Shown piece after piece: positions 43,095 through 59,963 of a DNA stretch of 64,000 bases (within the stretch, counting starts at the first letter, position 1; every line of letters begins with the position of its first letter). Position numbers and translations under genes: made by a program. The notes under the pieces were generated by a model, which worked only from the letters and a program-made list of their open reading frames with translations, was not told the DNA's origin and searched no databases. The stretch lies in the IMG/VR virus record IMGVR_UViG_3300042350_002797, positions 186,001 to 250,000 of that record. The stretch is one strand, 5' to 3'.

Positions 43095-43124
43095 GATTAC
43101 TCCAAATTGGTTGATATTTTCTGT

Positions 43125-43153
43125 ATTATACTATCAATTAAAATGGATGTCAA
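43125..43153 (-). promoter_or_regulatory. Sigma70 promoter
   Basis: TTGACA-17-TATAAT. Confidence 0.8.
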
Positions 43154-43375
43154 CTATAATCTGAAGGTAATTCTACCTTTGGTTAGATCGTATGGGCTAA
43201 CTTCTATTCGAACATTGTCACCCAAAATTACTTTGATTTTGTGTTGTTTAAGTTTACCGCCCATATAACAAATAAGTTCATGTGCAGTATCGTCTACTTT
43301 GACTTTAAAAGTACTATTAGGAAGAACATCGACGACTTCTCCGGTGAATTCTATCAGTTCACTGTTTTTAGCCAT
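43154..43375 (-). CDS. infA: Translation initiation factor IF-1
   Basis: IEFTGEVVDVLPN..F.V, GK.....IKVILGD.V.IEVSPYDLTKGRITFR; start MAK at 43375. Confidence 0.93.
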   Translation of the reverse strand: MAKNSELIEFTGEVVDVLPNSTFKVKVDDTAHELICYMGGKLKQHKIKVILGDNVRIEVSPYDLTKGRITFRL

Positions 43376-43538
43376 TTTTTGATATAACAATCGAATTGTC
43401 TTGAACTTTAATAGTCAATTGATCGCCTTCCTTCCAACCGTTTAAGTCTAAAATTTCTTGTGGTATTTTCATAAGTATGTTATCTGGATCCCCTTCAATT
43501 TCTTCGAATATTTCTTCTGATTTAAAAATAAGTTTCAT
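43368..43538 (-). CDS. AbrB/MazE/SpoVT-like DNA-binding protein (56 aa)
   Basis: Not in track. MKLIFKSEEIFEEIEGDPDNILMKIPQEILDLNGWKEGDQLTIKVQDNSIVISKNG*. Confidence 0.7.
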   Translation of the reverse strand: MKLIFKSEEIFEEIEGDPDNILMKIPQEILDLNGWKEGDQLTIKVQDNSIVISKNG

Positions 43539-43595
43539 TTTGATATAAAGTCTTTCTGTGAAGTATAAGTATAATTATATTTTTTGTCAATTAAA

Positions 43596-43844
43596 ATGAA
43601 TAACATAGAGCAGCAAATTTTACAAACAATTAAAGATATGAAGATCGGTAAAGACCAATCTATCACTATGCATTCAACTCTTAAAGAAGATTTAAATTTG
43701 GACAGTTTAAGCTTTACAGAATTGTTGATATCGTTAGAAGAACAGTTTGAAATCGAAGTGGACTTAGATGATCCAGAGTTACCAAAGCTTAATACATTAA
43801 ATGATATCAATGAAGTTATCTCAAAATTAATCAGTCTTAAGTAA
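43596..43844 (+). CDS. acpP: Acyl carrier protein 1
   Basis: EDLNLDSLSFTELLISLEEQFEI (DSL phosphopantetheine Ser); acidic. Confidence 0.9.
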   Translation: MNNIEQQILQTIKDMKIGKDQSITMHSTLKEDLNLDSLSFTELLISLEEQFEIEVDLDDPELPKLNTLNDINEVISKLISLK

Positions 43845-44612
43845 TTTTATCACCCAATAAGTCGGGTCTATTTCCCACCAACGCTTTCCATAGTTGATGT
43901 TTGTAGGATCTCCGTGATGATTATTGTGCCAACTTTCCCCTAACGTAATAGGCCAAATCCAAACAATATTTACACTGTCGTCTTTAGTTTCGAGATTTCT
44001 ATAACCTAGTTTCTTAATGTGAGTCACACTTGTTTGTATATTAAAAACTTGATAGGTAATGAATGCAGGTAGTATTACAGCATATAACCAAAGATTTATA
44101 TCAATTAATAAAAAAGCGGCATGACTGATTAAAAAGATTTTAGCGTAATTTTTATGAAAGAAAATACAATCTTTGTCTTTAAGCAAATCTACAATATGCT
44201 TTGTATTATATTGTCCTTCCTTTAGTTTAAACATCCACCAGATATAACTGTGCCAAAACCCATGATGAGGGCTGTGAGGATCTTTATCTTCATCACTATA
44301 TCTATGATGATAACTTCTGTGTATTGTGGCCCATTGAATAGGACTACCTTGTCCTGATAAATTTCCAAACCAAAGAATTATTATCTTTACCCATCTTTTT
44401 ACTTTAAAACTTTTGTGACTGAACAATCTATGATAGCCGGCGCTTACTCCAATAATTTTAATACAAATGAAACCAATAATATAGTATGCCCACCAATAAG
44501 GAGTATAATCTACAAACAGATTATAAATGCTGTATAATCCTAAAATATGGATAGGAATCACACCACACCAAAGATTACTAAATGATATAATGTTTTTAAA
44601 AATTTGTTTCAT
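43827..44612 (-). CDS. Membrane fatty acid desaturase (delta-9-like)
   Basis: GYHRLFSH, HRSYHH, DPHSP, GESWHNNHH, WWEIDP; start MKQ at 44612 is ATGA-coupled. Confidence 0.9.
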   Translation of the reverse strand: MKQIFKNIISFSNLWCGVIPIHILGLYSIYNLFVDYTPYWWAYYIIGFICIKIIGVSAGYHRLFSHKSFKVKRWVKIIILWFGNLSGQGSPIQWATIHRSYHHRYSDEDKDPHSPHHGFWHSYIWWMFKLKEGQYNTKHIVDLLKDKDCIFFHKNYAKIFLISHAAFLLIDINLWLYAVILPAFITYQVFNIQTSVTHIKKLGYRNLETKDDSVNIVWIWPITLGESWHNNHHGDPTNINYGKRWWEIDPTYWVIKLLKTD

Positions 44613-45151
44613 TTGTGTTTCCAGGAATTCAATAAAGAGTCGTCGCCGTGATATATGATATGTTGCCAACAACTATCATCATCACTATTTGGGCAAGTTT
44701 GATATTTATAGTTGTTGGTATCAAACGTCAAGTCAGAATATTTTTTAAAATCTCTTATTAGCATACTTTGCCAATGGTTGTATTGTCTGCTTACAAATAC
44801 TAATTTTGAATCAGTGTTATTTTGTAACCATTTAACTTGTTCTGACACCATTAAACAGATTTGAGGACTGACAAATTTAGTAATGGGAATTCTCTTTATT
44901 TTCCACATTCTATTCAAAATTCTATAAACTCTATCTGGCCAGCAATCTCTTCGTATAATACTGCTACAATGAGTAGGGTCTCCATTTTCGTCGAACGCTA
45001 TACTAAAAGCTGCTGATCTTTCAAAAAGATACTTGTTGTAATTTACTGCTAATGGATCTGTTTTGTTATTGTGCTGATGTTGTCTTAAATTTTCGAAAAG
45101 TTTGTCTAAGTACGAGTCGGATCCCGGAGTCCAAATTTTAACACTAATCAT
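44609..45151 (-). CDS. Hypothetical protein, possible GNAT-like acyltransferase
   Basis: Between acpS and the desaturase; RVYRILNRMW, LVFVSRQ. The fold is a guess. Confidence 0.4.
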   Translation of the reverse strand: MISVKIWTPGSDSYLDKLFENLRQHQHNNKTDPLAVNYNKYLFERSAAFSIAFDENGDPTHCSSIIRRDCWPDRVYRILNRMWKIKRIPITKFVSPQICLMVSEQVKWLQNNTDSKLVFVSRQYNHWQSMLIRDFKKYSDLTFDTNNYKYQTCPNSDDDSCWQHIIYHGDDSLLNSWKHK

Positions 45152-45507
45152 GTTACTTCCAAAATAGCACTGGCTATGAGATAGTCTCGTTCGTGACTAA
45201 AACTAAGATGACAAGTTGGTCCTGCTAATTGTTCTTTAAACTGTACTGTTGGACGACCTTCGTGATTGGATTTAATTTTAATATTTTTCCAAGTTACTTT
45301 ATCTCGTATTCCTTTTCCAAAAGCCTTGGCAATGGCTTCTTTTCCTGCCCATATTTTAGCCAAATATTGAAATTTTAATTTGTGGTTTTTGAATTCTTCT
45401 AATTCTTCATCTGTGCAAATACGCATTGCAATTTTAGTTAGTCGTAGATCGTTCATCATATGAAAACGATTTAAATCTACAATATCAATTCCGTGTCCTA
45501 ATATCAT
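45148..45507 (-). CDS. acpS: Holo-ACP synthase (4'-phosphopantetheinyl transferase)
   Basis: GHGIDIVD, WAGKEA.AKA.G.G, GRP, LSFSHE. Confidence 0.93.
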   Translation of the reverse strand: MILGHGIDIVDLNRFHMMNDLRLTKIAMRICTDEELEEFKNHKLKFQYLAKIWAGKEAIAKAFGKGIRDKVTWKNIKIKSNHEGRPTVQFKEQLAGPTCHLSFSHERDYLIASAILEVT

Positions 45508-45513
45508 ACAGTA

Positions 45514-45542
45514 ATTATACTTTTTTTAAATCTGTGTGTCAA
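45514..45542 (-). promoter_or_regulatory. Sigma70 promoter; probable leaderless acpS transcript
   Basis: TTGACA-17-TATAAT with ATG 6 nt downstream. Confidence 0.8.
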
Positions 45543-45570
45543 TAGCCTGGTAAATACACCGGAGGATATT

Positions 45571-46380
45571 ATGTTTATAGGACACATTAACGACTTAGAA
45601 ATCGGCCAAGCCAAATCGATTGAAGTTCTTGAAAACAAAAAAGTTTTAATCAATGAAAATGGTGTATACAAAATAGGTAGTAATATTTGCCCTCATCAAA
45701 ATAGCAGAATTATTTCCGGAACACGTACAGAACTTAGATGCCAGTACCACGGATGGTCGTGGAATATGGATGGATCACCTAAAGATTCAGGTGCTAGTAC
45801 TATGTGTAATAAGCAAAAATTACATATGAAAACAGCGTATGAATATAAAGGTCTTTTATTCGAAGAAGAATTAGATTTTTCAATGCTCGAAGAATTAAGT
45901 TTTGAAAATTTAAGATTAGAAGAATTTAGAATCGATACGGTTAATGCTGATCCAAAAATTAGTATGGATATATTTTTAGACGTCGATCATATTCCAATCG
46001 TTCATAACGGAGTCTATGATTTATTAGGAATCGAAGGTAAAGCAGATGTTAAATGGAGTTATGCAGACTGGGGAAGTATGCAGACTGTTAGTGACGAATC
46101 GGGAAAAGTTATTGCTCGTTGGATCGCTATCTATCCTTATACTATGATAGAGTGGCAAGATAAAGCATTGTTTATAACACGGTCTTTCAATGAAACACAA
46201 ATGGCAGTATGGAAATATAAAGATATAACCGAGTCAGAAGAAAACTATAGAACTAATGAAAGTATGTGGGAAAATGCATTTTCACAAGATAAAGCTCAAG
46301 CAGAGCAAATGGTAAGATTTCCTTCTGCTAATTTAGAAGAAGCCAAAATTCATTACAGAGAGTGGTTAAGTAAAAAATGA
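45571..46380 (+). CDS. Rieske non-heme iron oxygenase alpha subunit
   Basis: CPH...CQYHGW (Rieske 2Fe-2S); DVDHIPIVH and FSQD (mononuclear Fe); TAAATA and GGAGG upstream. Confidence 0.88.
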   Translation: MFIGHINDLEIGQAKSIEVLENKKVLINENGVYKIGSNICPHQNSRIISGTRTELRCQYHGWSWNMDGSPKDSGASTMCNKQKLHMKTAYEYKGLLFEEELDFSMLEELSFENLRLEEFRIDTVNADPKISMDIFLDVDHIPIVHNGVYDLLGIEGKADVKWSYADWGSMQTVSDESGKVIARWIAIYPYTMIEWQDKALFITRSFNETQMAVWKYKDITESEENYRTNESMWENAFSQDKAQAEQMVRFPSANLEEAKIHYREWLSKK

Positions 46381-47285
46381 AATTGTTGTATAATGATTAC
46401 ATGCGTAGTTCAGGAAATGGGTCAACTTGGTCAGTAGAAATAGACCCTCCTACTAGATCAGTTAAAAGTTATTTCGAAGAAACTAAAATTGCTTGTGGGT
46501 TAATATATGAGCAAAGAACTGCTCCTTTACAACTATGTTATAGTGGAGGCCTTGATAGTGAATATGTTCTAAGTACGTTATTATACTTAGGCATACCAGT
46601 AGAAGTATTCATTATGAATACTCAATACAATTATCATGAAACCAAATATGCATTTAAATTTTGTGAATCAAAGAACATTACTCCTACCATAGTTGATCTA
46701 GATTATGATAAATTTGTAGAATCTGGTAAACTAATAGAAATAGCAGAATCCATGTGTTGCGCACAGTGGCAAATACCTGCTAATATGTGGCTAGTGGAAC
46801 AATTAACAGGTACAGTTATAATTGGTAATGATCCTCCACATATGAAGTTAAACAAAGAAGATAATCTTTGGTATCTCGATGAAGAGGAAGTTATTCATAG
46901 TCAATTTAATTTTTGGAGAAATCGAGATATACTTGGAACACCTTTTCTGTTAAGCTATACTCCTGAATTAATGTTAAGTTTTTTATTAGATCCGACTATG
47001 GAAAAATTAGCTAATCATGGATTTCCAGGTAAATTAGGAACTAACAGTACTAAAGTTCATGTGTTTAATAGAGACAGCAATTTTAATTTAGAACAACGTG
47101 TTAAACAACACGGATATGAAAATGCTGAAAAAAGTTTGATTTTTAATCATCCTGACATTCAAACTGTGATTAGTTGGAAAGATCGCTGGGGCGGAACTAG
47201 CGACCATCAGTATCATACTGTAGTAGAAAAACTCAGTTCGGGAAAATCTTCTAAAGCTTTTTCAGTATGTCCTTCAAATTCTTAA
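46377..47285 (+). CDS. PP-loop ATP pyrophosphatase (asparagine synthase C-terminal-like)
   Basis: LCYSGGLDSE; no glutaminase domain. Confidence 0.7.
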   Translation: MKLLYNDYMRSSGNGSTWSVEIDPPTRSVKSYFEETKIACGLIYEQRTAPLQLCYSGGLDSEYVLSTLLYLGIPVEVFIMNTQYNYHETKYAFKFCESKNITPTIVDLDYDKFVESGKLIEIAESMCCAQWQIPANMWLVEQLTGTVIIGNDPPHMKLNKEDNLWYLDEEEVIHSQFNFWRNRDILGTPFLLSYTPELMLSFLLDPTMEKLANHGFPGKLGTNSTKVHVFNRDSNFNLEQRVKQHGYENAEKSLIFNHPDIQTVISWKDRWGGTSDHQYHTVVEKLSSGKSSKAFSVCPSNS

Positions 47286-47288
47286 TAT

Positions 47289-47747
47289 ATGAATCAATTA
47301 ACTAACCAAGAAGTTCTTTCAATATTGCCTCATCGTTATCCATTTCTGATGATTGATAAAGTTATCGAATACTCCGACACAGATCTAATAGCAGTGAAAA
47401 ATTTCACAATCAATGAGCCATATGTACAAGGACATTTTCCAAACAATCATATAATGCCAGGTGTAATGATGGTAGAATCTATGGCACAAGCCAGCACAAT
47501 TTTAGGGTTCAAGTACATAGAAAAGAATGCAACTATGGAACAAATTTTGTCACAATTTTCTGGAGGATTTTTGTTTGTAGCTGCTGATGAAGTGAGATTT
47601 AAACGAGTTGTGCATCCTGGAGATCAATTAAAAATATTTTCTAAATTGACTAGATGTGCTAGAACTTTATTTGAATTTGAAACTAGAATAGAAGTTGATA
47701 GGATTATAGTTGCTTCGGCCAAGTTAAAAGCCACTGCTGGTATTTAA
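47289..47747 (+). CDS. fabZ: 3-hydroxyacyl-ACP dehydratase
   Basis: LPHRYPFLMIDKV, KNFTINEP...GHFP...MPGV...ESMAQ, RFKR.V.PGDQL. Confidence 0.95.
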   Translation: MNQLTNQEVLSILPHRYPFLMIDKVIEYSDTDLIAVKNFTINEPYVQGHFPNNHIMPGVMMVESMAQASTILGFKYIEKNATMEQILSQFSGGFLFVAADEVRFKRVVHPGDQLKIFSKLTRCARTLFEFETRIEVDRIIVASAKLKATAGI

Positions 47748-47773
47748 TATTAAATAGCTATATAGGAGGACGT

Positions 47774-48142
47774 ATGGATTTAGAAAATTGGACACCATTG
47801 ACTACGCAAGAAATAGAAAAGAAATTTATTGGAATGATTAATGACTATCTAAAATTAAATTTAGAATATCCTGTAGATCCAAATCTTTCTTTAAAAGATT
47901 TGAGATTAGTTGGGGATACGAAAGTTATTGAACAATTACAAGATGTTGATGAAGAATCATTAGAAATTATAAAAAAGAATTTTGAAATCGATAGCATAGA
48001 TATATTGGAATTAGTAATTCAGATCGAAGAAGAATTTGGCGTAGTAATTGACGATAAAGATGTGGCCACTCTACTTAGATGGGAAGATCTTATTGGTTAT
48101 ATAGCAGATAGTCAAGACCCTAAAAAAATGAAACAAAAATGA
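47774..48142 (+). CDS. Acyl carrier protein 2 (elongated)
   Basis: IDSIDILELVIQIEEEFGVVIDD; 122 aa with extra sequence before the Ser motif. Confidence 0.85.
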   Translation: MDLENWTPLTTQEIEKKFIGMINDYLKLNLEYPVDPNLSLKDLRLVGDTKVIEQLQDVDEESLEIIKKNFEIDSIDILELVIQIEEEFGVVIDDKDVATLLRWEDLIGYIADSQDPKKMKQK

Positions 48143-49317
48143 AACCTGTTTATATAGTTGATTATGCAGTAATAGATACAATAGGATTTGATATAGAATC
48201 GAACTATAAAAATCTTACTCTATTAGCTAAAGGTCCTCAGACCTGCACTAGATACGATGTAACAGAGTATCCTCACATACTCTGTACTAAAGGTTATGAA
48301 ATTTCTCAGTATGATGGACGTAATATTTTTTCAAAGTTGCATAACGATTTATCTGATCAGTTATTATCGAAAGCTACTATTCCATCAGATTCTGCCGTAA
48401 TAGTGAGTGCGTTTGCTCATTCAGGCAACGAAGTAAGAAATGATTTTGATAACTCATTCCGAGGCGGAATGAGCCGATTTAGTCCTACAAAGCTTTTTCT
48501 AAATAATAATGATTTAATGAGTGCTAACATAGCGAAAAAATTAAAATTAGAAGGATTCAGCTCTGGGGTAATGGCAGCGTGTAGTTCTAGTATGTTCAAC
48601 TTACACTATGCTTTCACTTGCATACAATCAGGAGTGATTTCGTCCGCTGTAGTTGGAGCTATAGAAACTCCAATACATCCTTCTGTGCAATATTACTGGC
48701 AATGTACTAGTGCAATTTCTACTCGAGATGGAGGAATCTGTAAACCATTTGATAAGAACAGAGATGGGTTTGTTCAAGCCGAGGGAGGAACATTATGGTT
48801 AATATGCGATGAAGAAACATTGAAAAAATATAATTTAACTCCTAAAGCTAAAATTCTTTCTATAGTGCTGTCTTCTAAATGCTATGATACTGCTACTATG
48901 ACTGCTCACGATAAAACAGGAAAGAGTCAAATTGATACAATTAATAAAGCACTAACTATTGCAAATAAAAAATCGGAAGATATAGCTTTTTTTAATGCAC
49001 ATGCTACTAGTACTTTGATAGGAGACGATATTGAATTAGACGTTTTTCAGCAAAAATTTAAAGACGTTGATATTCCGTGTGTTAGTTTTAAAGGTTATAT
49101 CGGCCACACTATGAGTGCAAGTGGTATGGTTGAATCTGCTTACGGATTAGAAGCATTAAAAAATCAGTATCTGCATCCAAACTACGATTTAACAGATCCA
49201 ATAAGCGACGATCCTAGATTAATTACAAAAGCGATTCCTATCAAAGGAGATACATTTATTAAAGCTTCTTTTGGGTTTGGGGGCAGAACTGCTATAGCAG
49301 TATTTCAAACAATTTAG
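48139..49317 (+). CDS. fabF: Beta-ketoacyl-ACP synthase (FabF/FabB-like)
   Basis: AACSSS (Cys), PFDKNRDGFV..EG, NAHATST..GD (His), K..IGHT..ASG (His), SFGFGG. Confidence 0.9.
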   Translation: MKPVYIVDYAVIDTIGFDIESNYKNLTLLAKGPQTCTRYDVTEYPHILCTKGYEISQYDGRNIFSKLHNDLSDQLLSKATIPSDSAVIVSAFAHSGNEVRNDFDNSFRGGMSRFSPTKLFLNNNDLMSANIAKKLKLEGFSSGVMAACSSSMFNLHYAFTCIQSGVISSAVVGAIETPIHPSVQYYWQCTSAISTRDGGICKPFDKNRDGFVQAEGGTLWLICDEETLKKYNLTPKAKILSIVLSSKCYDTATMTAHDKTGKSQIDTINKALTIANKKSEDIAFFNAHATSTLIGDDIELDVFQQKFKDVDIPCVSFKGYIGHTMSASGMVESAYGLEALKNQYLHPNYDLTDPISDDPRLITKAIPIKGDTFIKASFGFGGRTAIAVFQTI

Positions 49318-49327
49318 GTTTCAATAT

Positions 49328-50161
49328 ATGTACAATCATACTTCAGATACAAATACTGACCCGAGACATTTGTTGCGGTTGAAAATGGAAAAAATCGATG
49401 GATCAAGTTTTATGACAGACGGACCTCCGGCTGGTTACGACTTACCTACCGAATACATTGAAAAAATGAAAGTTATCAGTGAAAAGTATAAACCCATACA
49501 ATGGCTACCGTTGGATATACCTAAAATTGATATAGGCGATCCTAAAGAATTTTTAGAAATTTACGATAGTCAACGTTATCCTGTTGTAAGAATTAAACCT
49601 GATGTAGCAGAACCATGGAGTAAGGAAGATCATCCTTTTAAGCAAGATAGTAGCTGGAATAAAGCAGCATTTAATGGTCTTCATCTATATCAAAATCCTA
49701 TGATTGATCTTAAGCTAAGTACCTTTTACGGAAAAGTTTATCTTGGAGATATTCCTGTTTTCAAAAGGATTATTGAACAAGTGCATGATTATATTCCTCA
49801 TCACCCTTTTATCAGTATATTCATCTGGGAAAGTTTATCGACTATTATTCCTCATAGGGATGCCGCATCATATTGGAAATGTCCTACAGATTTTAGATCT
49901 ATGTTATATGATGAAAATGATAAACCTACTTTGTATGTAGCAGAAGACGGATCAGATGAACCAATCTATATTGACCTTCCTGAGGATACTAATACTTTTT
50001 GTTGGAGCAATGGAAAAATGGTTCATGGATCTGATTATCATGGAAAAAGAAAATTACTACTAATTATGACAGGAATACAGCATACAAGAAAATCTGTAGA
50101 GTTGTTTGATCGCAGTATTGCAAAGTATAAAGACAAATTAAATTATAAATTAGAAATGTAA
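49328..50161 (+). CDS. Putative Fe(II)/2OG-type oxygenase, paralog A
   Basis: PHRD...MVHGSD (HxD...H); WLPLDIP. Confidence 0.55.
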   Translation: MYNHTSDTNTDPRHLLRLKMEKIDGSSFMTDGPPAGYDLPTEYIEKMKVISEKYKPIQWLPLDIPKIDIGDPKEFLEIYDSQRYPVVRIKPDVAEPWSKEDHPFKQDSSWNKAAFNGLHLYQNPMIDLKLSTFYGKVYLGDIPVFKRIIEQVHDYIPHHPFISIFIWESLSTIIPHRDAASYWKCPTDFRSMLYDENDKPTLYVAEDGSDEPIYIDLPEDTNTFCWSNGKMVHGSDYHGKRKLLLIMTGIQHTRKSVELFDRSIAKYKDKLNYKLEM

Positions 50162-51030
50162 TGGATCTAAGTATCTTACAAAAAAAAATTGAAGAGGCGA
50201 AAGTCTCTCAATTTGATTATTCAAAATTAAACACTAGTTACACAAAACTAGGTCCTTCCTTGCATAAAAATGCAAGTTTTATTCAGGCTTCATGGTCACC
50301 CGAGATACCTATTTCTGAATCTTATCTAAAAAAAATAAAGTTATTAGAAGAAAAATATGAATCTATTTTTTGGTTACCTTTAGATATACCTAAAATTCAA
50401 ATAAGCGATTGGAAACTTTTTTTAGAAATTTGGGAAAGAGAAAAAATACCTATTGTTAAAAAAAACGATCCAGATTTTATTCAAGAATTTTACGGAATGC
50501 ATATTGCATCTAACCCATTAATTGACTTTTACTGTCATGATTTGTACGATTCAAAAGGTAAGATGATAGAAAATCAAATTTCGGAAAAAAGCGGATTTAC
50601 TCAAGGAAGAGACAATATAGGTTTATACACTAAAAAACTTTATAAAGATAGATTTTTTAATTCTTTAGTTAGTAATATTATGGCAACTTTTCCTATTAGT
50701 GTTATTAATACTATATCTATATTCGAAGTTATGAATGATGTAGCACCTCATAGGGAGGAAACTTGGTACTGGAAATGTCCTACTGAATTTAGAATAAATC
50801 TTTATGATGAAAATAAAACCCCTGTATTTTACGTAACGGATATCGAAAGCGGTGAAACGAGATATATAGATCTACCTCAAGATACAAACAGTTTTTGTTG
50901 GAGTAATGGAACTAAATTATACGGGGGTGATTATCACGGAAAAAAGAATTTTCAAATAGTTGTTAACGCGATATGGGATACAGCAAAGTTAGATAATTTG
51001 CTAAGTACAAGTTTAAAAAAATACGGATAA
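50161..51030 (+). CDS. Paralog B of the preceding oxygenase-like protein
   Basis: WLPLDIPKI, PHREETWYWKCPTEFR, DLPQDTNSFCWSNG..LYGGDYHG. Confidence 0.55.
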   Translation: MDLSILQKKIEEAKVSQFDYSKLNTSYTKLGPSLHKNASFIQASWSPEIPISESYLKKIKLLEEKYESIFWLPLDIPKIQISDWKLFLEIWEREKIPIVKKNDPDFIQEFYGMHIASNPLIDFYCHDLYDSKGKMIENQISEKSGFTQGRDNIGLYTKKLYKDRFFNSLVSNIMATFPISVINTISIFEVMNDVAPHREETWYWKCPTEFRINLYDENKTPVFYVTDIESGETRYIDLPQDTNSFCWSNGTKLYGGDYHGKKNFQIVVNAIWDTAKLDNLLSTSLKKYG

Positions 51031-51031
51031 A

Positions 51032-51571
51032 ATGGAATACTGGAAATATTTAGAATTAGATAATGTAGAAAAGATTCAAGAAAAAACTTTAACGTTTATT
51101 CGAGAAAAAACAGATTTTATGGATAAATCTAAATATAAAGGTCCATATATTAATTTGCCCTTTTTCGATTACAATAAGGATGTTCCAGAGCTTCAAGAAA
51201 GTTTTTTAAATTATGGGTTGTATGTCACTGGTATTCATATATTTTTAATGTGGAATAACACCGATTGTATTCCCCATAAAGATTATACAGATGCCATTGG
51301 TAGAGTGAATATCCCTATATTAAATTGTCAAGGATCTAAAACCATATTTTATAAAAATTTAAAATCTAAAAGATTAATGTTGCCTACTAGGTCTCCATTT
51401 TATATGACTATAAACAAAGATTACGAAGAAGTTGGCGGAGTTGAAATAGATCGTCCTACTATTGTCAGAATAAGTGAAGGACATACCGTAGTAATGAATG
51501 ATAAAAGTTTTCCTAGAATTACACTTACTGTTTCAACAATTCCTGATGTAGGATTATTATTGGACGATTAA
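51032..51571 (+). CDS. Putative Fe(II)/2OG oxygenase (cupin/DSBH)
   Basis: PHKD, VNIPILNC, EGHTV, PRITLTV. Confidence 0.6.
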   Translation: MEYWKYLELDNVEKIQEKTLTFIREKTDFMDKSKYKGPYINLPFFDYNKDVPELQESFLNYGLYVTGIHIFLMWNNTDCIPHKDYTDAIGRVNIPILNCQGSKTIFYKNLKSKRLMLPTRSPFYMTINKDYEEVGGVEIDRPTIVRISEGHTVVMNDKSFPRITLTVSTIPDVGLLLDD

Positions 51572-51891
51572 ATTTCGCTATCTTCCAAAGCAAAATCAAT
51601 TCCGTATTGATTCGTTATAATTTCAAAGTAATTCCAAATAAATTCGTTCTCCTCCTTAGAGTAAAAATTATTAAATTCTTCTTTACTTTCAAAAATTACA
51701 GAACTATATAATATTGTTCCTTGAGGTTGTTCGACAAATTTAGTTTCCTTTCTTATAAATCCAGGAACTATATACAATGCATTTAGATAAGGTTCATACA
51801 TCGAATGTGAACGTATATCTCGTATGAAATTCAATAACCGTTCTTTATCTGATGCATCTCTTGACTTTAAAATTGCAGTTCTGCTAAACAT
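51568..51891 (-). CDS. Small dimeric alpha-beta barrel (ABM-like) protein
   Basis: PGFI......SVIFESKEEFNNF pattern. Confidence 0.4.
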   Translation of the reverse strand: MFSRTAILKSRDASDKERLLNFIRDIRSHSMYEPYLNALYIVPGFIRKETKFVEQPQGTILYSSVIFESKEEFNNFYSKEENEFIWNYFEIITNQYGIDFALEDSEI

Positions 51892-51900
51892 AATTTTCCT

Positions 51901-52497
51901 TTAATCTTCAATTTTAAACGCTGTTCGGAATCCAATTCTTATAGGCCACGACCTATTTAATATCATATTTTTTTGATAATCATATTTTGGAATAGAATTC
52001 GACTCTAATACATGTTCAGTTATATAGTGATATTTAGATAAATTATAATCTTTTTTGAAATTTTTAGAAAATCTAAGAAGTCTATCTATTCCTCCAATCG
52101 AACGTACACCCAAGTGTTCTGCATTATAAGCAAAATGCCATCTATTTAATTTTCTTTTATTTTCCATTTCGTCGAAAATAATTTGATCAATGTCTTTAAA
52201 CATGTCGATCATTTCAGTATTATTAATTAAAAATCCTCTATTTTCGAATAAATGGTGTGCCCAACACCATGCCGGTGCCGTAGAAAATTCTTTCAAGATT
52301 ATTGCCCCTACTAGATTATTTTTGTTAAATATTCCAACATTAAAAAATAACTTATCGTTTAACATTGTTTCTGTAGACTGTATTAAGTAGTCTTGATACT
52401 GATGATCGGTATATCCGTTAAATACTTGAGGGTTTTTAACAAATAAATTTTTTAAAATACTTTGGTCTTCTTTTTGTAAAATTTTAATATTAAACAT
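51901..52497 (-). CDS. Hypothetical protein, possible GNAT fold
   Basis: IKILQKED..., FNVGIFNKNNLVGAI. Confidence 0.4.
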   Translation of the reverse strand: MFNIKILQKEDQSILKNLFVKNPQVFNGYTDHQYQDYLIQSTETMLNDKLFFNVGIFNKNNLVGAIILKEFSTAPAWCWAHHLFENRGFLINNTEMIDMFKDIDQIIFDEMENKRKLNRWHFAYNAEHLGVRSIGGIDRLLRFSKNFKKDYNLSKYHYITEHVLESNSIPKYDYQKNMILNRSWPIRIGFRTAFKIED

Positions 52498-52548
52498 GAT
52501 AACTTACTTATCATGTTCAAAAAAAAAATAATTTAATTAGGAAAATGT

Positions 52549-52881
52549 ATGTATATAAGAAGTTATAAGTTAGTATGTCAAGGTCAACCTAAAATGGATC
52601 GATTTCGAATAGTCACTACACAGGGGTTAAAATTCAATCAATTAATGAAAAATTACAATGTTAAATTTCAAGGGTTTGTTGAAGCACGTGATGATCACTA
52701 TGATAACGAACGTTGGGAAATTACCACTGTATGGGAATCAAAGTCAGATTGGGAAAAAGCTATGCAACATCCTATGCGAAAAATGTTCTGGTCTCGATTC
52801 GAAATGGAGGCGTTAAAGCATGATATTGATTTGACTATAACAGACAGTCTCGGTGAAACAATTAAACCTTTAGAAATTTAA
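52549..52881 (+). CDS. Antibiotic-biosynthesis-monooxygenase-like protein
   Basis: ITTVWESKSDWEKAMQHP. Confidence 0.5.
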   Translation: MYIRSYKLVCQGQPKMDRFRIVTTQGLKFNQLMKNYNVKFQGFVEARDDHYDNERWEITTVWESKSDWEKAMQHPMRKMFWSRFEMEALKHDIDLTITDSLGETIKPLEI

Positions 52882-52891
52882 GGAATATGAT

Positions 52892-53287
52892 ATGGAAAAA
52901 TTTATAAAAATACTGACAGTAACACAAACTGCTCCTGATATCGATGGCGAAATTAATGTGATAAAAACTTTAGAGACATCTGTTGCATGGCACCAATTAT
53001 ATTACTGTCATCCTCATCCATCTAATTATATCGACAATGTTACAGTTAATTTAAGTGAAGATAAATCGTATGCCGAGTTTCACGCTGATCATAATTCTTT
53101 GGAAACATATAACGACTGGTTTAAAACATTTGGAGAAATTTCAGAAGAGTTATATAAAGAATGTATCGATGAGTTAGAAACTGAAGGACTAATATTCGAA
53201 AGATTCTTTTCTGATGTAGATAATGCTCAATTAGAAGTGTTAGGCAATCATGCTCAACCTTTGAAAAATTTTATAAGCAAAATTTAA
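52892..53287 (+). CDS. Hypothetical acidic protein (possible ABM-like barrel)
   Basis: 131 aa; HNSLETYNDW; RBS AAGGA. Confidence 0.45.
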   Translation: MEKFIKILTVTQTAPDIDGEINVIKTLETSVAWHQLYYCHPHPSNYIDNVTVNLSEDKSYAEFHADHNSLETYNDWFKTFGEISEELYKECIDELETEGLIFERFFSDVDNAQLEVLGNHAQPLKNFISKI

Positions 53288-53290
53288 TAG

Positions 53291-54589
53291 ATGTTAAGAA
53301 TTATCGATGTTCTTCAAGTTATTGTAAAATATAATCTTGAGGAACATCTATTTCAAAATTCAAATTTCAAATTACTTTCAATCGCAAAACTTTCTTTTAA
53401 GAATCTATTCGGCATAACAACTCCGCACGGAACTTTTGAATATCGATTACGTTGTGCGCTAGAGGAACTAGGACCAGTTTTTATCAAATTTGGACAAATG
53501 TTATCATCTAGACCTGATTTAATTCCTGCAAGTATTGTTAAAGAATTAAAATTTCTTAGAGAGTCAGTAAAGCCTTTTTCTGAACATGATGTAGAAAAAA
53601 TAATAGAATTAGAATTAAAAAACTCTACAGAAAACATATTTAAAAAGTTTGATAAATCTCCTATTGCTGCGGGTAGTGTAGCGCAAGTTCATTATGCTGA
53701 ACTACACACTGGTGAGTTAGTTGCGGTTAAAATATTAAGGCCTAAAATAGAATGTATTATTAAAAAAGACATAAAGTTATTTAGAAATATTTTACAATTA
53801 ATTTTTTTGTATAATAAAAATTTAAAAAAAATTAAGATAGAAAAAATTTTAGATGAGTTATCAAATAGTTTAATGTTAGAACTAGATTTATTGATAGAAT
53901 CTGATCATATGAAAAAGTTTGCATCTAATATGAAACATGTTTCATATGTATGTGTTCCTAAAGTATATGACAAATATAGTACAAAAACTATTTTAGTGAT
54001 GGAAAGAATGTTTGGAATTCCTATTGATCAAAAACAACAACTTATTGATCAAGGTGTTGATGTTAGGATAGTAGTTCAACAAGGTGTCGAAGTAATGATG
54101 TTACAACTATTCCGAGACGGATTTTTTCATGCAGATCAACATCCCGGAAACTTATGGATTAAACCTGATGGATCTCGAATTTATTTAGATTTTGGAATAG
54201 TTGGGTCTATTACAGAGGCAGATAGAAAATCATTATTGCAAATTCTTTTCTTTTTATATTCTAAAAATAATAAAAAAACGATTGAAAAATTAATAGATGC
54301 CGGATGGTTAAACAAAAATCAAAACTTAGACCAATTAGAAGTCGATTTAATTGATATAGCACAGCTATTTGTTAATCGAAAACAAAAAGATTTTTCAATT
54401 GGTAATGTATTAAATAAATTTTTCAATTTAGTAGAAAATTATCAAGGCAATGTGCCTTATCAATTTACATTATTGGTAAAAACAATTTTAGTAACTGAAG
54501 GTATAGTAAAGCAACTAACACCTGATCTAAATATTCAAAGTATAGCAGAGCCGGTTCTTTTAAAGTTTTTTACTAAATCTTTTACTTAA
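53291..54589 (+). CDS. ubiB: UbiB/ABC1/AarF atypical kinase
   Basis: RLR.ALEELGPVFIKFGQMLS.RPDL, AAGSVAQVH, VAVK, FFHADQHPGN, LDFGIVG. Confidence 0.93.
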   Translation: MLRIIDVLQVIVKYNLEEHLFQNSNFKLLSIAKLSFKNLFGITTPHGTFEYRLRCALEELGPVFIKFGQMLSSRPDLIPASIVKELKFLRESVKPFSEHDVEKIIELELKNSTENIFKKFDKSPIAAGSVAQVHYAELHTGELVAVKILRPKIECIIKKDIKLFRNILQLIFLYNKNLKKIKIEKILDELSNSLMLELDLLIESDHMKKFASNMKHVSYVCVPKVYDKYSTKTILVMERMFGIPIDQKQQLIDQGVDVRIVVQQGVEVMMLQLFRDGFFHADQHPGNLWIKPDGSRIYLDFGIVGSITEADRKSLLQILFFLYSKNNKKTIEKLIDAGWLNKNQNLDQLEVDLIDIAQLFVNRKQKDFSIGNVLNKFFNLVENYQGNVPYQFTLLVKTILVTEGIVKQLTPDLNIQSIAEPVLLKFFTKSFT

Positions 54590-55339
54590 GAGAAATCCTA
54601 TATAACCCTCTATATCTATTTCCCACCAACGATGTTGAAGTATCAATCGTCCAGGATGAGCATGATGATTATTGTGCCATCCGAACCCCATACCTAACCA
54701 ACCTAACCATAAATTATTCGTAGTTGCATCGTCTGTAGAAAAATTTCTATAACCTGATCTATGACACCAATAGTTAACTGCACCTAGTCTAAAAAAATCC
54801 ACACAGTAGGCCAAACAGTACATCATGAAGTACACCGGATCAATCAAAACAAGTGTAAAACAAAATGTAAAAATTATTTTATAATGATGTCTATGAAAGA
54901 AAAGATAAAACGGGTCACGCAACATCTGTACAGCTAATTTTTTAGCATACTTGTCTTGTAAATATTCTTGTTCGTTATTTCCCTGAGGAAATGTCCAAGC
55001 ATAGAATACGTAGAACCAACTGTTATACATTGGACTATGAGGATCGTTAACTTTATCTGCTCTAAGATGATGAGCTTTATGCTGTATGACCCAAAATGTC
55101 ACTGGACCAATAGCGCCTAAAGTAGATAAAAATCCTAATAGCCATTTTACAGGTTTATAGGTTTCGAACTGACCATGAGCAAAATATCTATGTGCTGCTA
55201 CACCATTGCCTACTACACCAATGACAAACCAAATTACTAAGAAACTGATCCAATGATTAGGTAGTTCCCATATAGCAATTAGTCCCCATATATGAAAAGG
55301 TAGAAATACTACCCAAAAGTTAAATCCATATTTTTTCAT
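54560..55339 (-). CDS. Membrane fatty acid desaturase
   Basis: HRYFAH, HKAHH, DPHSP, GWHNNHH, WWEID. Confidence 0.9.
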   Translation of the reverse strand: MKKYGFNFWVVFLPFHIWGLIAIWELPNHWISFLVIWFVIGVVGNGVAAHRYFAHGQFETYKPVKWLLGFLSTLGAIGPVTFWVIQHKAHHLRADKVNDPHSPMYNSWFYVFYAWTFPQGNNEQEYLQDKYAKKLAVQMLRDPFYLFFHRHHYKIIFTFCFTLVLIDPVYFMMYCLAYCVDFFRLGAVNYWCHRSGYRNFSTDDATTNNLWLGWLGMGFGWHNNHHAHPGRLILQHRWWEIDIEGYIGFLLSKRFSKKL

Positions 55340-56085
55340 TGTTTAATCAATCTAATAATGTAAGCAGGTATATCAAACTCCCACCAACGTTCTTGATTGT
55401 TCCAAGCATATGGTTTAGCGTGATGTGTATTATGCCACCCTTCTCCTAATGTGATAAGATTGGCAATCCAACTATTACGGCTTTGATCTTTGACGTCCGG
55501 ATAAGGTCTATAACCATGTCTATGTGCTATAACAATAATAGCACTAGTGCTGTGTAAGCAAAGACAAGCAGGTATAGCAAACACATATATTATCATTAAT
55601 GGATCATAAGCAAATAAAATTGATATCCAAATTAGAATTACCAGCAAATATTTTTTGTGTAGTTCTCGTTGAAAGACATTTTCACGCATATCACGAACTA
55701 GTTTTAAATCTAATCTAGGCATATTCCATATACCGAACCATGCTCGAAAATTTCCCAGTATATAAGGACTATGAGGATCTCCAGGACGTTCTGCTGATCT
55801 ATGATGCTGTCTATGTACAGCTACCCAAGCTAATGGACTACCTACCACAGTAATAACACCTATAAGACTAAACAGTTGCTCCCAGAATCGATGTGTTTTA
55901 AAACTACGATGACTGAGTAGTCTATGGTAACCAATGTTAATACCAAGTACACCTATGATCCAATAGGTTACTAAGGACACAAATAATAAACTATATTCAG
56001 CAATGTAGATAGCATATATTATACCTATTGTAGCAATTACATGATTAATTACTTGTAGTGTTCTTACAGTTTGATTATGTGTCAT
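55336..56085 (-). CDS. Membrane fatty acid desaturase
   Basis: GYHRLLSH, HRQHH, GDPHSP, GEGWHNTHH, WWEFD. Confidence 0.92.
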   Translation of the reverse strand: MTHNQTVRTLQVINHVIATIGIIYAIYIAEYSLLFVSLVTYWIIGVLGINIGYHRLLSHRSFKTHRFWEQLFSLIGVITVVGSPLAWVAVHRQHHRSAERPGDPHSPYILGNFRAWFGIWNMPRLDLKLVRDMRENVFQRELHKKYLLVILIWISILFAYDPLMIIYVFAIPACLCLHSTSAIIVIAHRHGYRPYPDVKDQSRNSWIANLITLGEGWHNTHHAKPYAWNNQERWWEFDIPAYIIRLIKQ

Positions 56086-56644
56086 TTTTATCATCTACAA
56101 CTAGCCATCCTAATTTAAGTAAGTCATCTCGAATTTCTTCAGTGACAACGCCTTCAGACACAAACTTAGTACGAGCAGCCCATTCGCAGAAAGTCTCTTC
56201 ATCTTTATCCCAACTGCCTGCAAGCCCTCCCATGCCACTACAGTACCAGTCAATGTAGTCACCTTCTTGACGCATGTCAGCAATGATGCCTCCAGCATAG
56301 CGCCAACTAGCACTCCATGTCTCTTCTTTTAATACTGGCCACAAATCACGTTTTTGAAATTCATTATTACACATTGCTGCATATAAATTTTGAGCGTAAT
56401 GTTCTTTATTGCGAACTTTTTCCAAAATCCAATCGCAAGTACGCAGATCATATTCTAAGTTATTTTTTTGCCACTCAGGATTTGTTTCATTTTCCTCGGC
56501 TCGAATTCCCCAGCTATTATAAAACTCTAGCATAGTCTTGACATGTTCATCATTTTCAGGAGTGCGACCTTTTTCAGCCCATCTTTCAAGGGACTTAGAT
56601 TTTTGAAAACTATAACGATCAGGACTTTTACTTGGCTTGTTCAT
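56075..56644 (-). CDS. Hypothetical phage protein
   Basis: NLEYDLR, YAQNLYAAMCNN, SWRYAGGIIA, DYIDWYCSG. Confidence 0.65.
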   Translation of the reverse strand: MNKPSKSPDRYSFQKSKSLERWAEKGRTPENDEHVKTMLEFYNSWGIRAEENETNPEWQKNNLEYDLRTCDWILEKVRNKEHYAQNLYAAMCNNEFQKRDLWPVLKEETWSASWRYAGGIIADMRQEGDYIDWYCSGMGGLAGSWDKDEETFCEWAARTKFVSEGVVTEEIRDDLLKLGWLVVDDKNDT

Positions 56645-57559: not shown

Positions 57560-57588
57560 ATTATACTATCAATCGGATGTAATGTCAA
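57560..57588 (-). promoter_or_regulatory. Sigma70 promoter
   Basis: TTGACA-17-TATAAT. Confidence 0.8.
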
Positions 57589-57594: not shown

Positions 57595-58200
57595 CTATAC
57601 TGCTAGGTATTCTACGTCTGCTGCCAAAATAAATCTAAATTTGTTGCTCTGAACTATTCCAGGTCTGTGCCAATAATCACTAGGGTATACTAACCAACTA
57701 AATTTTTCTGGTTTAACATAAAATTTTCCAGAGTTTTCTGGACCGTTAGGTGCAAACTCTGTGCCACAATAATTTAGATCAGTTACATCGTCAGGAATAT
57801 CTAAATACCAAATTCCGCTTAATAATTTACTTTTTTCAGTGCTAGGATGCCAATGATGATGCCAAAGATTGTTTCTATCTTCTGCACCTTCTAAGTTAGT
57901 CATGAAACTCCAAGCCTGCATATTAAAAACTTTGACTTCTCTTCCTAGATACATGAATACACTGAAAAGAAAACTCATTCTGTATTTTAACCAAACTTCT
58001 TCTGTTCGATTAAAAATATTTTCTTTAGTTTGATATTTTGGGCTGTTAGTATAGTAGTTGCCGTTATCAATAATTTGTTTTACAATATTGCAAGCATTAT
58101 CGTTATCTTGTTTGTTAATGACAGAACTGAAGTCGAACTTTTTAAAGATTTGATTGCTATCTATTACAGTAGAATTTTTAGGTAGGATAATATTATTCAT
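57595..58200 (-). CDS. Putative 2OG-Fe(II) oxygenase
   Basis: AWSF, WHHH, LSGIWYL, GTEF, YPS.YWH.P, RFILAAD. Confidence 0.65.
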   Translation of the reverse strand: MNNIILPKNSTVIDSNQIFKKFDFSSVINKQDNDNACNIVKQIIDNGNYYTNSPKYQTKENIFNRTEEVWLKYRMSFLFSVFMYLGREVKVFNMQAWSFMTNLEGAEDRNNLWHHHWHPSTEKSKLLSGIWYLDIPDDVTDLNYCGTEFAPNGPENSGKFYVKPEKFSWLVYPSDYWHRPGIVQSNKFRFILAADVEYLAV

Positions 58201-58207: not shown

Positions 58208-58286
58208 TGGTCGGGGAAGAGGGATTCGAACTCTCGATCTCCTGCTCCCAAAGCAGGCGCTTTAAACCAGACTAAGCTACACCCCG
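58208..58286 (-). tRNA. tRNA-Pro(TGG)
   Basis: Cloverleaf; CCTGC-TT TGG GA-GCAGG; encoded CCA. Confidence 0.95.
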
Positions 58287-58291
58287 AAACT

Positions 58292-58367
58292 TGGAGCGGG
58301 TGATCAGGTTCGAACTGACGACATTCTGCTTGGAAGGCAGACGCTCTACCAACTGAGCTACACCCGC
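58292..58367 (-). tRNA. tRNA-Gly(TCC)
   Basis: TCTGC-CT TCC AA-GCAGA; ends TCCA. Confidence 0.95.
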
Positions 58368-58371
58368 ATGT

Positions 58372-58572
58372 GTTCTTGTTAGGCTACTAATCCTCATTAG
58401 CCCCTAACTGAGTTGTTACCCTGTCCCCTGACGTTCCTTATGGCTTGTGCCAGCTAAACCTACGATTTTTCTTGCACCCATGTAAGCGGGTTCTGAGGCG
58501 TCATCGTATGAGCCCTGGTATTTTGGTGACACCAACCACCCCCTTTAATAACGCAGAAGGGACTGCGAGGTT
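58372..58572 (-). ncRNA. Candidate ~200-nt pseudoknotted ncRNA between tRNA-Thr and tRNA-Gly
   Basis: GC-rich, multiple complementary segments, H-type pseudoknot near the 5' end and a hairpin at the 3' end. Confidence 0.5.
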
Positions 58573-58574
58573 CT

Positions 58575-58650
58575 TGGTGCTGGTCGCAGGACTCGAACCC
58601 GCCACCTACGGATTACAAATCCGTTGCTCTACCTGATGAGCTAGACCAGC
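58575..58650 (-). tRNA. tRNA-Thr(TGT)
   Basis: ACGGA-TT TGT AA-TCCGT; CCA. Confidence 0.95.
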
Positions 58651-58657
58651 GTAAACT

Positions 58658-58849
58658 TTATTCTACTACTGTTTCTTCAACTTTGTGTCCGTATTTAATT
58701 AAAGTATTAATGCGACGTTGAATTTTCATTTTGTGCTTAGGACGACAAGATCCGAGCAATTCATTTAATTGTTTAACATTCAAAGGACCAAGACGTGTTT
58801 TACCAGTCTTGGTTTTCATAGGATCACGTTTAAAACTTTTAGCTGCCAT
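58658..58849 (-). CDS. Small basic hypothetical protein
   Basis: 63 aa, RBS GAGGA; KTKTGKTRLGPLN. Confidence 0.6.
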   Translation of the reverse strand: MAAKSFKRDPMKTKTGKTRLGPLNVKQLNELLGSCRPKHKMKIQRRINTLIKYGHKVEETVVE

Positions 58850-59076: not shown

Positions 59077-59077
59077 T

Positions 59078-59414: not shown

Positions 59415-59435
59415 TTGCTTCTTTCAAAAAAAAAT

Positions 59436-59527: not shown

Positions 59528-59535
59528 GTAAAACT

Positions 59536-59927: not shown

Positions 59928-59932
59928 AGCTA

Positions 59933-59961: not shown

Positions 59962-59963
59962 GC

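Follow-up and report, generated by a model that had tools for sequence, protein, structure and literature searches.

The window analysed here is a 64,000-nucleotide stretch of the IMG/VR virus record IMGVR_UViG_3300042350_002797 (positions 186,001 to 250,000), a CheckV-complete 364-kb jumbo phage genome from lake metagenomes. Its T4-type affiliation was supported by a gp23 match at 8e-100, accompanied by tail-fibre and ligase PHROGs. Between 43.6 and 56.1 kb of the window lies an island of about 20 genes, conserved in dozens of uncultured relatives, which encodes two acyl carrier proteins (ACPs), their activating enzyme AcpS, a ketosynthase (KS), a FabZ dehydratase and many putative lipid-tailoring enzymes. 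This gene content had been put forward in the original prediction from the sequence alone, and our family, motif and structure searches confirmed that the observation is real.

At the left edge, ACP1 (43596..43844, +) is a small acyl carrier protein with a DSL serine that scored 28.4 bits on PF00550, over the cut-off, and gave NCBIfam ACP hits at 7e-12, the serine motif being conserved in 15 homologues. It is followed by desaturase 1 (43827..44672, -; likely start at the Met at 44612), a membrane His-box fatty-acid desaturase matching PF00487 at 5e-16, in which the boxes HRLFSH, HRSYHH and HNNHH can be read. The next gene (44609..45151, -) encodes a 180-aa protein (u180) with a predicted GNAT fold (AF2 pLDDT 94.6), for which Foldseek returned 99 PDB GNAT hits at E<=1e-3. 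Its structural neighbours in Swiss-Prot include AAC(6') and the acyl-ACP-using NodA (TM 0.55), LuxI and FabY, although the best PDB hits are acetyltransferases and the GNAT fold does not tell acetyl transfer from long-chain acyl transfer. AcpS, the holo-ACP synthase (phosphopantetheinyl transferase; 45148..45507, -), matched PF01648 at 6.6e-20 and scored 86 bits on TIGR00516 against a cut-off of 59.8. Just upstream of it, a perfect sigma-70 consensus promoter (TTGACA-17-TATAAT, 12 of 12 positions; 45514..45542, -) lies in the 63-bp gap between AcpS and the Rieske gene.

In the opposite direction, a short Rieske non-haem-iron oxygenase (45571..46380, +) matched PF00355 at 6.2e-12, carries CxH...CxxH and a D-x3-D-x2-H-x4-H iron motif, and gave PDB hits to Rieske oxygenase alpha subunits, including SxtT. 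The adjacent PP-loop ATP pyrophosphatase (an adenylating enzyme; 46377..47285, +) has an invariant SGGxDS and belongs to an unnamed family of 654 proteins, and its profile hit NAD synthetase at 5.8e-7, as well as TtuA and LarE. FabZ, the 3-hydroxyacyl-ACP dehydratase (47289..47747, +), matched PF07977 at 3.2e-24 and NF000582 with 146 bits against a cut-off of 113, its catalytic His and Glu motifs being conserved. ACP2 (47774..48142, +), which has an N-terminal extension of about 40 aa, scored 24.4-24.5 bits on PF00550, also over the cut-off, and its DSI serine is conserved in 32 homologues.

The KS (48139..49317, +) is a divergent FabF-type elongating enzyme with both Pfam KS domains, in which C148, H288, H323 and K318 are invariant in 21 homologues. 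Among solved structures it is most like FabF, but it scored just 158 bits against a FabF cut-off of 494 and falls far below every curated cut-off. Phylogenetic analysis placed it in a monophyletic (100/100), phage-only clade with 47-64% identity inside, separated from the best cellular matches by a stem of about 6.4 substitutions per site. About 100 clusters share more than 50% identity, after which there is a gap, and no representative genome of the 185,579 species searched has a match above 30%.

Several assignments downstream of the KS were weaker. The 277-aa protein u277 (49328..50161, +) has a predicted 2OG-oxygenase (DSBH) fold (AF2 pLDDT 87.6) with HxD/E...H, and a protein language model gave a lead to Asp_Arg_Hydrox. 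In its 289-aa paralogue u289 (50161..51030, +) the distal His is replaced by Tyr. The 179-aa protein u179 (51032..51571, +) is a probable 2OG oxygenase judging only by its invariant H82, D84, H151 and R162, and it shows no detectable profile similarity to u277. The 198-aa protein u198 (51901..52497, -) is GNAT-like only on a poor ESM model (TM 0.53-0.59; 3g8w is identified as an acetyltransferase) and a weak profile hit. The 110-aa protein u110 (52549..52881, +) is ABM/EthD-like, a predicted dimeric alpha+beta barrel (TM 0.65-0.71) with a mean column identity of 61% across 21 homologues, and the 107-aa u107 (51568..51891, -) is its distant paralogue (hhalign probability 91.6%, E 8e-7). A third ABM candidate, the conserved 131-aa protein at 52892..53287 (+), was not supported, and neither a fold nor a family could be assigned to it. 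The island continues with a UbiB/ABC1 atypical kinase (53291..54589, +; PF03109 at 8.7e-72), whose slot in some relatives holds an unrelated 377-399-aa protein, and with desaturases 2 (54560..55339, -) and 3 (55336..56094, -), which matched PF00487 at 1.6e-13 and 5.9e-18, respectively, three His boxes being readable in each. A conserved 189-aa protein without any family match (56075..56644, -) marks the right edge.

The original prediction had noted that FabD, FabG, FabI and FabH are missing from the window. Profile searches extended this to the whole 364-kb genome, where FabD, adh_short_C2, adh_short (FabG/FabI-type SDRs), AMP-binding, the FabH C-terminal domain, thioesterase and PlsC-type acyltransferase were all absent. 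Dependence on host malonyl-ACP, FabG and FabI is therefore a fair inference. No ferredoxin or reductase partner for the Rieske protein and the desaturases was found either, and evidence of transcription was restricted to a single 151-nt metatranscriptome contig.

We next asked whether these genes co-occur in related phages. The same gene set was found in about 40 independent contigs, on contigs of 46 to 320 kb, and is kept even where the order is rearranged (contigs L016, L018, L019 and L038). Variants such as L037 and L038 lack FabZ and the PP-loop protein, so these are not obligatory. Among backbone relatives presence is all-or-none: 79 of 80 loci anchored on the flanking phosphoesterase lack every island gene, and in three of them the flanking genes lie 6.4-9.3 kb apart. 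It should be considered that synteny among related phages is expected from common descent and does not prove a joint pathway. No bona fide GenBank phage carries the KS, FabZ, AcpS, the PP-loop protein or the GNAT, and full-text literature searches revealed no earlier description. This is the most complete fatty-acyl pathway that we could find in any phage.

The comparison also revealed that the island is a composite. Desaturase, u180, Rieske and PP-loop genes, sometimes with an SDR or radical SAM gene, form a separate and wider module which exists in relatives with no ACP, AcpS, FabZ or KS (L262 and L263). The ACP/AcpS/FabZ/KS/2OG/ABM block is inserted into this module and is swapped between lineages. 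The desaturases therefore cannot depend on a phage ACP, which argues against an ACP-tethered polyyne route.

The original prediction had interpreted the region as one cluster diverting host malonyl/acyl-ACP flux into a dedicated unsaturated, oxygenated, possibly amide-linked lipid or small molecule, by analogy with aryl polyene and polyyne or JamB/JamC clusters. Our results support this interpretation only in part: the genes are real, phage-borne, conserved as a set and have intact catalytic residues, and reliance on the host is reasonable, but it is not one uniform cluster, the polyyne analogy is weakened, and whether there is a single product, and which, remains inference.

With about even confidence, we favour the view that the region is a mosaic lipid-pathway island of a lineage of freshwater T4-type jumbo phages. 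The analysis itself established that the two ACPs, AcpS, the elongating Cys-His-His KS and FabZ are intact and under constraint, that they are confined to a phage-only clade, and that the phage has no FabD, FabH, FabG, FabI, acyl-AMP ligase, thioesterase or PlsC. The remaining steps are inferred. In this view, AcpS would be transcribed from the perfect host-type sigma-70 promoter and would convert the phage ACPs to the holo form, host FabD would load malonate, the phage KS would extend host-derived acyl chains on the phage ACP, and host FabG and phage FabZ would process the beta-carbon. The result would be a private acyl-ACP pool running beside host FAS II, from which GNAT-fold acyltransferases would take the chain onto an amine acceptor, while 2OG oxygenases and ABM-like proteins would tailor it. 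The surrounding module, presumably older, also works without any phage ACP and so presumably acts on host acyl lipids. The net effect would be desaturated or oxygenated, probably N-acylated, envelope lipids specific to the infected cell, although no product, substrate or acceptor has been identified and both u180 and the desaturases occur without any phage ACP.

The closest parallel is NodF/NodE/NodA of rhizobia, a dedicated ACP, a dedicated FabF-type KS and an N-acyltransferase. In both cases a private ACP and elongating KS lack an acyltransferase, ketoreductase or enoyl reductase of their own and rely on housekeeping FAS II, and a GNAT-related transferase would move the special acyl chain from the ACP onto an amine. 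There is, however, no sequence kinship beyond the superfamily, no NodB or NodC is present, and the phage adds AcpS, FabZ, a second ACP, desaturases, 2OG oxygenases, ABM-like proteins, a PP-loop enzyme and a Rieske protein. Compared with the housekeeping type II synthase (AcpP, AcpS, FabF, FabZ), the enzyme families are the same and the catalytic residues intact, but the set is incomplete and its KS clade phage-only. Ornithine-lipid and N-acyl-amino-acid pathways (OlsB/OlsC, FeeM) also combine a GNAT-type N-acyltransferase using acyl-ACP with a 2OG (Asp/Arg-hydroxylase-type) enzyme that hydroxylates the acyl chain. OlsC appeared among the structural neighbours of u277 and an OlsHI-type ACP model matched ACP1, but these matches are weak (TM 0.33 and E 1.9e-4) and no OlsA or PlsC-type O-acyltransferase is present.

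Among the alternatives, bulk membrane retuning is possible but unlikely. Under this reading ordinary auxiliary metabolic genes (FabF-like KS, FabZ, extra ACP plus AcpS, six desaturases) would boost or sustain host fatty-acid synthesis and raise unsaturation, keeping membranes fluid and growing during a long infection in cold lakes without any new compound being made. The near-canonical FabZ, the likeness of the KS to FabF among solved structures, the six or seven desaturase genes of the genome (three in the island) and the lake-water origin of the runs holding the sequence are in agreement with it. Single phage-borne His-box desaturases with this proposed role are known in marine cyanophages (PMC5776448), there without the carrier proteins, PPTase, KS and dehydratase found here. 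Nevertheless, the KS is far from every housekeeping KS, two distinct ACPs plus a dedicated PPTase are not needed to boost host flux, the co-inherited 2OG oxygenases, ABM-like proteins, GNATs and PP-loop enzyme have no role in bulk FAS, and the block is swapped and diversified between lineages.

Less likely still, the region could be a hypervariable cargo slot where lipid-related and other accessory genes accumulate without forming one pathway. The interval between the two flanking phosphoesterase genes holds quite different cargo in relatives, the island splits into modules that occur apart, it has five changes of strand and mixed promoters, and gene-by-gene identity to the closest backbone relatives ranges from 31% to 99%. 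On the other hand, the ACP, AcpS, KS and FabZ functions are mutually dependent by established biochemistry, and the genes of one of these modules (module B) are always found together, even after rearrangement, and are absent together in 79 of the 80 anchored loci.

A secondary-metabolite cluster making a diffusible polyyne, terminal alkyne, aryl-polyene-like or acyl-homoserine-lactone-like signal or weapon is very doubtful. ACPs do lie beside multiple desaturases, as in the bacterial JamABC, cay and pgn clusters, weak ApeP-like, ApeI-like and cispentacin (AmcB/E/F) profile hits were obtained, LuxI-type synthases are among the structural neighbours of u180, and the cassette diversifies as expected for an arms-race product. 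However, the fatty-acyl-AMP ligase and thioesterase that define polyyne and terminal-alkyne clusters are absent from the whole genome, there is no chain-length factor and no ketoreductase, the desaturases occur in relatives without any ACP, the Ape and Amc hits are much weaker than those to FabZ and FabF, and no Pfam match to the LuxI family was found.

Finally, despite a lower GC in the island (0.28-0.34) than in its flanks (0.36-0.39), an assembly chimera or host contamination can be practically discarded, since no cellular genome holds a close KS, identical sequence occurs on separate JGI contigs (L012, L013) and an IMG/VR contig (L001), independent Logan contigs from two studies span 43100-49000, across the left junction, with no differences, and the same junction genes appear on contigs of 290 kb and 271 kb.

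The window belongs to a single contig of 364,554 bp (bases 186,001-250,000), held as an IMG/VR virus record with a CheckV completeness of 100%. The contig encodes a T4-type major capsid protein (PF07068, 8e-100), and the nearest cultured capsids, 70-78% identical, belong to Sinorhizobium phage Phosso, Vibrio phage 2.275.O, Pseudomonas phage PA5oct and the GAP32/CBB/BF group, all of them jumbo myoviruses of Proteobacteria. Since no psbA was found and the nearest capsids came from phages of Proteobacteria, the idea of a cyanophage was rejected. PHROG matches in the window included tail fibres, a DNA ligase and an endonuclease, and the sequencing runs containing an identical copy of the ketosynthase (KS) region were labelled lake-water or freshwater metagenomes. 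Very large ORFs of 2545 aa and 1413 aa are present in the window (20255-27892 and 13301-17542, minus strand), the latter without a PHROG match, and another of 4975 aa lies at 100-120 kb of the genome. Close to the island, the phage encodes a translation initiation factor IF-1 homologue (window 43154-43390, minus strand), for which relatives carry Pfam eIF-1a and which is 64-97% conserved across them, next to a 56-aa ORF (43368-43538) that is weakly MazE-like in relatives. An array of 17 tRNA genes was found just downstream of the island (window 58208-63718, minus strand).

To determine whether the predicted gene content was real, the translated ORFs were compared to Pfam and NCBIfam models and the active sites were inspected among homologues. 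The observation held. Both acyl carrier proteins, ACP1 and ACP2, contained the PP-binding domain with a conserved serine in D-S-L/I, and AcpS scored above the curated cut-off for a group I PPTase (TIGR00516, 86 bits against 59.8), with its motifs conserved. FabZ also exceeded its cut-off (NF000582, 146 bits against 113), and its catalytic His and Glu motifs were conserved in 27 homologues. The KS contained both thiolase-fold KS domains (PF00109 at 1.9e-20 and PF02801 at 1.8e-19), and its Cys-His-His triad and active-site Lys (C148, H288, H323 and K318) were invariant. In contrast, orthology to the housekeeping FabF or FabB was not supported, since TIGR03150 gave only 158 bits against a cut-off of 494 and all 19 models fell below their cut-offs. 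The three membrane desaturases harboured the PF00487 domain and three His boxes, and UbiB was confirmed by Pfam. The Rieske protein (PF00355) presented both the 2Fe-2S ligands (CPH...CQYH, that is CxH...CxxH) and a D-x3-D-x2-H-x4-H mononuclear-iron motif in its translation, and it matched alpha subunits of Rieske oxygenases, among them SxtT.

The less certain assignments of the original prediction (a PP-loop ATPase, three Fe/2OG-like oxygenases, two possible GNATs and up to three ABM-like barrels) mostly held as well. The 302-aa PP-loop protein showed an invariant SGGxDS loop, and its profile matched solved members of this class, namely NAD synthetase (5.8e-7), TtuA and LarE. The 277-aa protein (u277) was predicted to fold with a pLDDT of 87.6 into a double-stranded beta-helix like those of PHD2 and ABH2, and contained an HxD/E...H triad, whereas its 289-aa paralogue (u289) has a Tyr in place of the distal His. 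For the 179-aa protein (u179) the assignment rests on the motif alone, with H82, D84, H151 and R162 invariant. The 180-aa protein beside AcpS (u180) was predicted to fold as a GNAT (pLDDT 94.6), but the 198-aa protein (u198) was GNAT-like only on weak evidence. The 110-aa protein (u110) resembled ABM/EthD barrels and the 107-aa protein (u107) was its distant paralogue, while the 131-aa protein (u131) could not be assigned. Pfam scans at E values up to 10 and PHROG scans of ten unknown proteins gave nothing significant. Profile searches against PDB sequences returned nothing for u277, u180, u110 and the family designated x389, and one weak GNAT hit for u198. Likewise, profile-profile comparisons of u179 with u277, u131 with u110 and u198 with u180 showed no relation. 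One more oxygenase might be encoded beside the island, where a 201-aa protein (window 57595-58200, minus strand) gave a weak 2OG-FeII_Oxy_5 match (7.8e-4).

We then searched the whole genome for the partners that such a pathway would need. No FabD, adh_short_C2, adh_short, FabH, AMP-binding ligase (PF00501), thioesterase (PF00975) or PlsC-type acyltransferase was found. Neither was there any Fer2-type ferredoxin, so that the Rieske protein would need a host partner. The fatty-acyl-AMP ligase and thioesterase expected beside the ACP and desaturases of a polyyne or terminal-alkyne cluster are therefore absent from the whole genome. The island did not fulfil the criteria for an aryl-polyene cluster either, as there is only one KS instead of a KS/CLF pair and no SDR, and the ApeP-like hit (1.1e-3) was far weaker than the FabA/FabZ hit (3.2e-24).

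A chimeric assembly had been named beforehand as a possible refutation, and the evidence spoke against it. An identical sequence was found on an IMG/VR contig of 165.8 kb (locus L001) and on two JGI contigs (loci L012 and L013). In addition, Logan contigs of 12.3 and 11.5 kb, from runs of two studies, spanned positions 43100-49000 with no differences, although it should be considered that these may come from the source samples. The same junctions recurred on contigs of 271 and 290 kb whose KS was only 55-57% identical, with ligase, ClpP, phosphoesterase and IF-1 on the left, and a 189-aa protein and a second phosphoesterase on the right.

The KS was found to belong to a phage-only lineage. In metagenomes, about 100 clusters exceeded 50% identity, followed by a gap, with ordinary FabF at 30-35%. 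A search of one representative genome for each of 185,579 prokaryote species (GTDB) gave nothing above 30%. In a maximum-likelihood tree, the 32 phage KS sequences formed one clade (100/100), separated from the best cellular matches by about 6.4 substitutions per site. By profile, the KS was nearest to FabF among solved structures, despite falling far below every curated cut-off.

The island genes are inherited as a unit. Across loci L002-L044 the same families recurred, even in those where the gene order was rearranged (L016, L018 and L019). A variant type (L037, L038, L029 and L030) harboured four to six desaturases and a radical SAM gene in front of ACP2-KS, and no FabZ or PP-loop gene. Of 80 IMG/VR loci anchored on the flanking 298-aa phosphoesterase (51-87% identical), 79 had none of the island genes, and the one exception had them all. 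In three loci (L185, L188 and L193) the two flanking phosphoesterase genes lay 6.4-9.3 kb apart, with other small genes between them. Since synteny among related phages is expected from common descent, this all-or-none pattern is stronger evidence for functional linkage than synteny alone.

However, the island is a composite. The PP-loop family has 654 members, far more than the KS clade, and some of its loci lacked the carrier proteins. Locus L262, which has the same backbone, carries desaturase, u180, Rieske (69% identical), PP-loop (61%), a u131-like gene, a 383-aa unknown, an SDR, a radical SAM gene, a GNAT and the 189-aa protein, but no ACP, AcpS, FabZ, KS, u277 or u110. Locus L263 has radical SAM, PP-loop, u180 and two desaturases, with several Asp/Arg-hydroxylase-type genes, and again no ACP or KS. 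Two modules could thus be distinguished. Module A holds the desaturases, the GNAT u180, Rieske, PP-loop, and UbiB or an unknown protein of 377-399 aa, and in relatives also an SDR, a radical SAM gene or TauD. The proteins occupying the UbiB slot in relatives (L002:14754-15920, L007:16226-17422, L262:11414-12565 and others) form a conserved 377-399-aa family with invariant His and Asp residues (H245, H255, H257, H335, D342 and D350) and no Pfam or PDB match. Module B, which is inserted into module A, holds ACP1, AcpS, FabZ, ACP2, KS, u277, u289, u179, u107, u110 and u198. Module B also looks exchanged between lineages, judging from identities and tree position: the backbone of the window is closest to that of L007 (phosphoesterases 91-99%, desaturase 3 94%), yet its KS is only 53% identical to that of L007 and branches near the base of the KS tree with L014 and L015.

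Regarding expression signals, three perfect 12-of-12 sigma-70 consensus promoters (TTGACA-17-TATAAT) were found on the minus strand (window 57560-57588, 45514-45542 and 43125-43153), all in intergenic gaps, and an 11-of-12 match at 43562-43590. The promoter at 45542-45514 lies directly upstream of AcpS, suggesting early transcription of AcpS, GNAT and desaturase 1 by the host polymerase. No sigma-70-like promoter was found for the plus-strand operon that starts at the Rieske gene. The T4 late-promoter motif TATAAATA was depleted rather than enriched (3 matches against 11 expected), and gene timing could not be read from it. A single 151-nt metatranscriptome contig matched the KS, which is weak evidence because DNA carry-over is not excluded.

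The analysis itself established the inventory of parts, their intact active sites, the missing partners and the modular structure; what the system does is inferred. According to established FAS II biochemistry, a Cys-His-His KS needs malonyl-ACP, so host FabD is required, and FabZ needs a 3-hydroxyacyl-ACP, so a ketoreductase is required, which this genome lacks although some relatives carry an SDR. We infer that the phage would set up a private acyl-ACP branch on host FAS II, as NodF/NodE do, with phosphopantetheinylation of the carriers presumed from sequence alone. GNAT-fold enzymes would unload the chain onto an amine, but long-chain acyl-ACP as donor is likewise an inference, since the structural neighbours of u180 include NodA, LuxI and FabY but also plain acetyltransferases. 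The 2OG and ABM-like proteins would tailor the product, and module A would modify acyl lipids independently of the phage ACPs. We consider this reading about as likely as not. The proposal in the original prediction that host malonyl/acyl-ACP flux is diverted into a dedicated unsaturated, oxygenated, possibly amide-linked product is only partly supported. Among the alternatives, a bulk retuning of membrane fatty acids survives best, although we regard it as less likely, and an unlinked cargo island seems improbable. A diffusible polyyne-, polyene- or AHL-like metabolite is more doubtful still, and an assembly artefact can be all but dismissed.

A more far-reaching possibility, which we put forward only tentatively, is that these jumbo phages make a lipid that exists only in infected cells. 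It would be a desaturated and oxygenated acyl chain, built on phage carrier proteins by the phage-only KS and passed by a GNAT enzyme to an amine acceptor, a bacterial-virus counterpart of the virus-encoded sphingolipid pathway of coccolithoviruses. Exchangeable cassette variants would then give different products in different phage lineages.

Phage auxiliary genes for lipids have so far been reported as single enzymes, such as the phage desaturases (PMC5776448). Full-text literature searches found no report of a phage with ACPs, a PPTase, a KS and a dehydratase together, and the review PMC12360287 does not mention such clusters. A megablast search of the 12.6-kb region against GenBank phages gave no match, tblastn searches with KS, FabZ and AcpS hit only multi-contig, host-contaminated "phage" records, and the PP-loop protein and u180 gave no match; hence, no bona fide GenBank phage was found to hold any of these five. 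We regard the island as a type II ACP-dependent acyl pathway acting as a phage auxiliary metabolic island. Here a virus carries the self-contained heart of such a pathway, namely carriers, their activating enzyme, and condensing and dehydrating enzymes, accompanied by around a dozen tailoring enzymes and kept across a widespread group of uncultured lake phages. If the island makes a distinct lipid, it would be the first multi-step lipid biosynthetic pathway of a bacteriophage that we could find, and would supply a marker for infected cells in lakes. The phage-only KS, PP-loop, GNAT and 2OG families would then be new enzyme families for acyl-chain chemistry.

Further lipid-related genes were found outside the island. 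A fourth desaturase (window 11765-12469, minus strand) sits among tail-fibre and structural genes and, unlike the island copies, is very close to a bacterial family (NCBIfam DesA family, 394 bits against a cut-off of 400), although it covers only the first 240 of 385 profile positions. It may be a recent capture from the host and a clue to host identity. A second lipid-like island lies at genome positions 261,700-270,900, 12-21 kb beyond the end of the window, and contains two radical SAM paralogues (30-32% identical to the radical SAM gene of the relatives' islands), an x195-like gene and two more desaturases. In all, the genome has seven or eight radical SAM genes, plus an Asp/Arg-hydroxylase gene at 141 kb.
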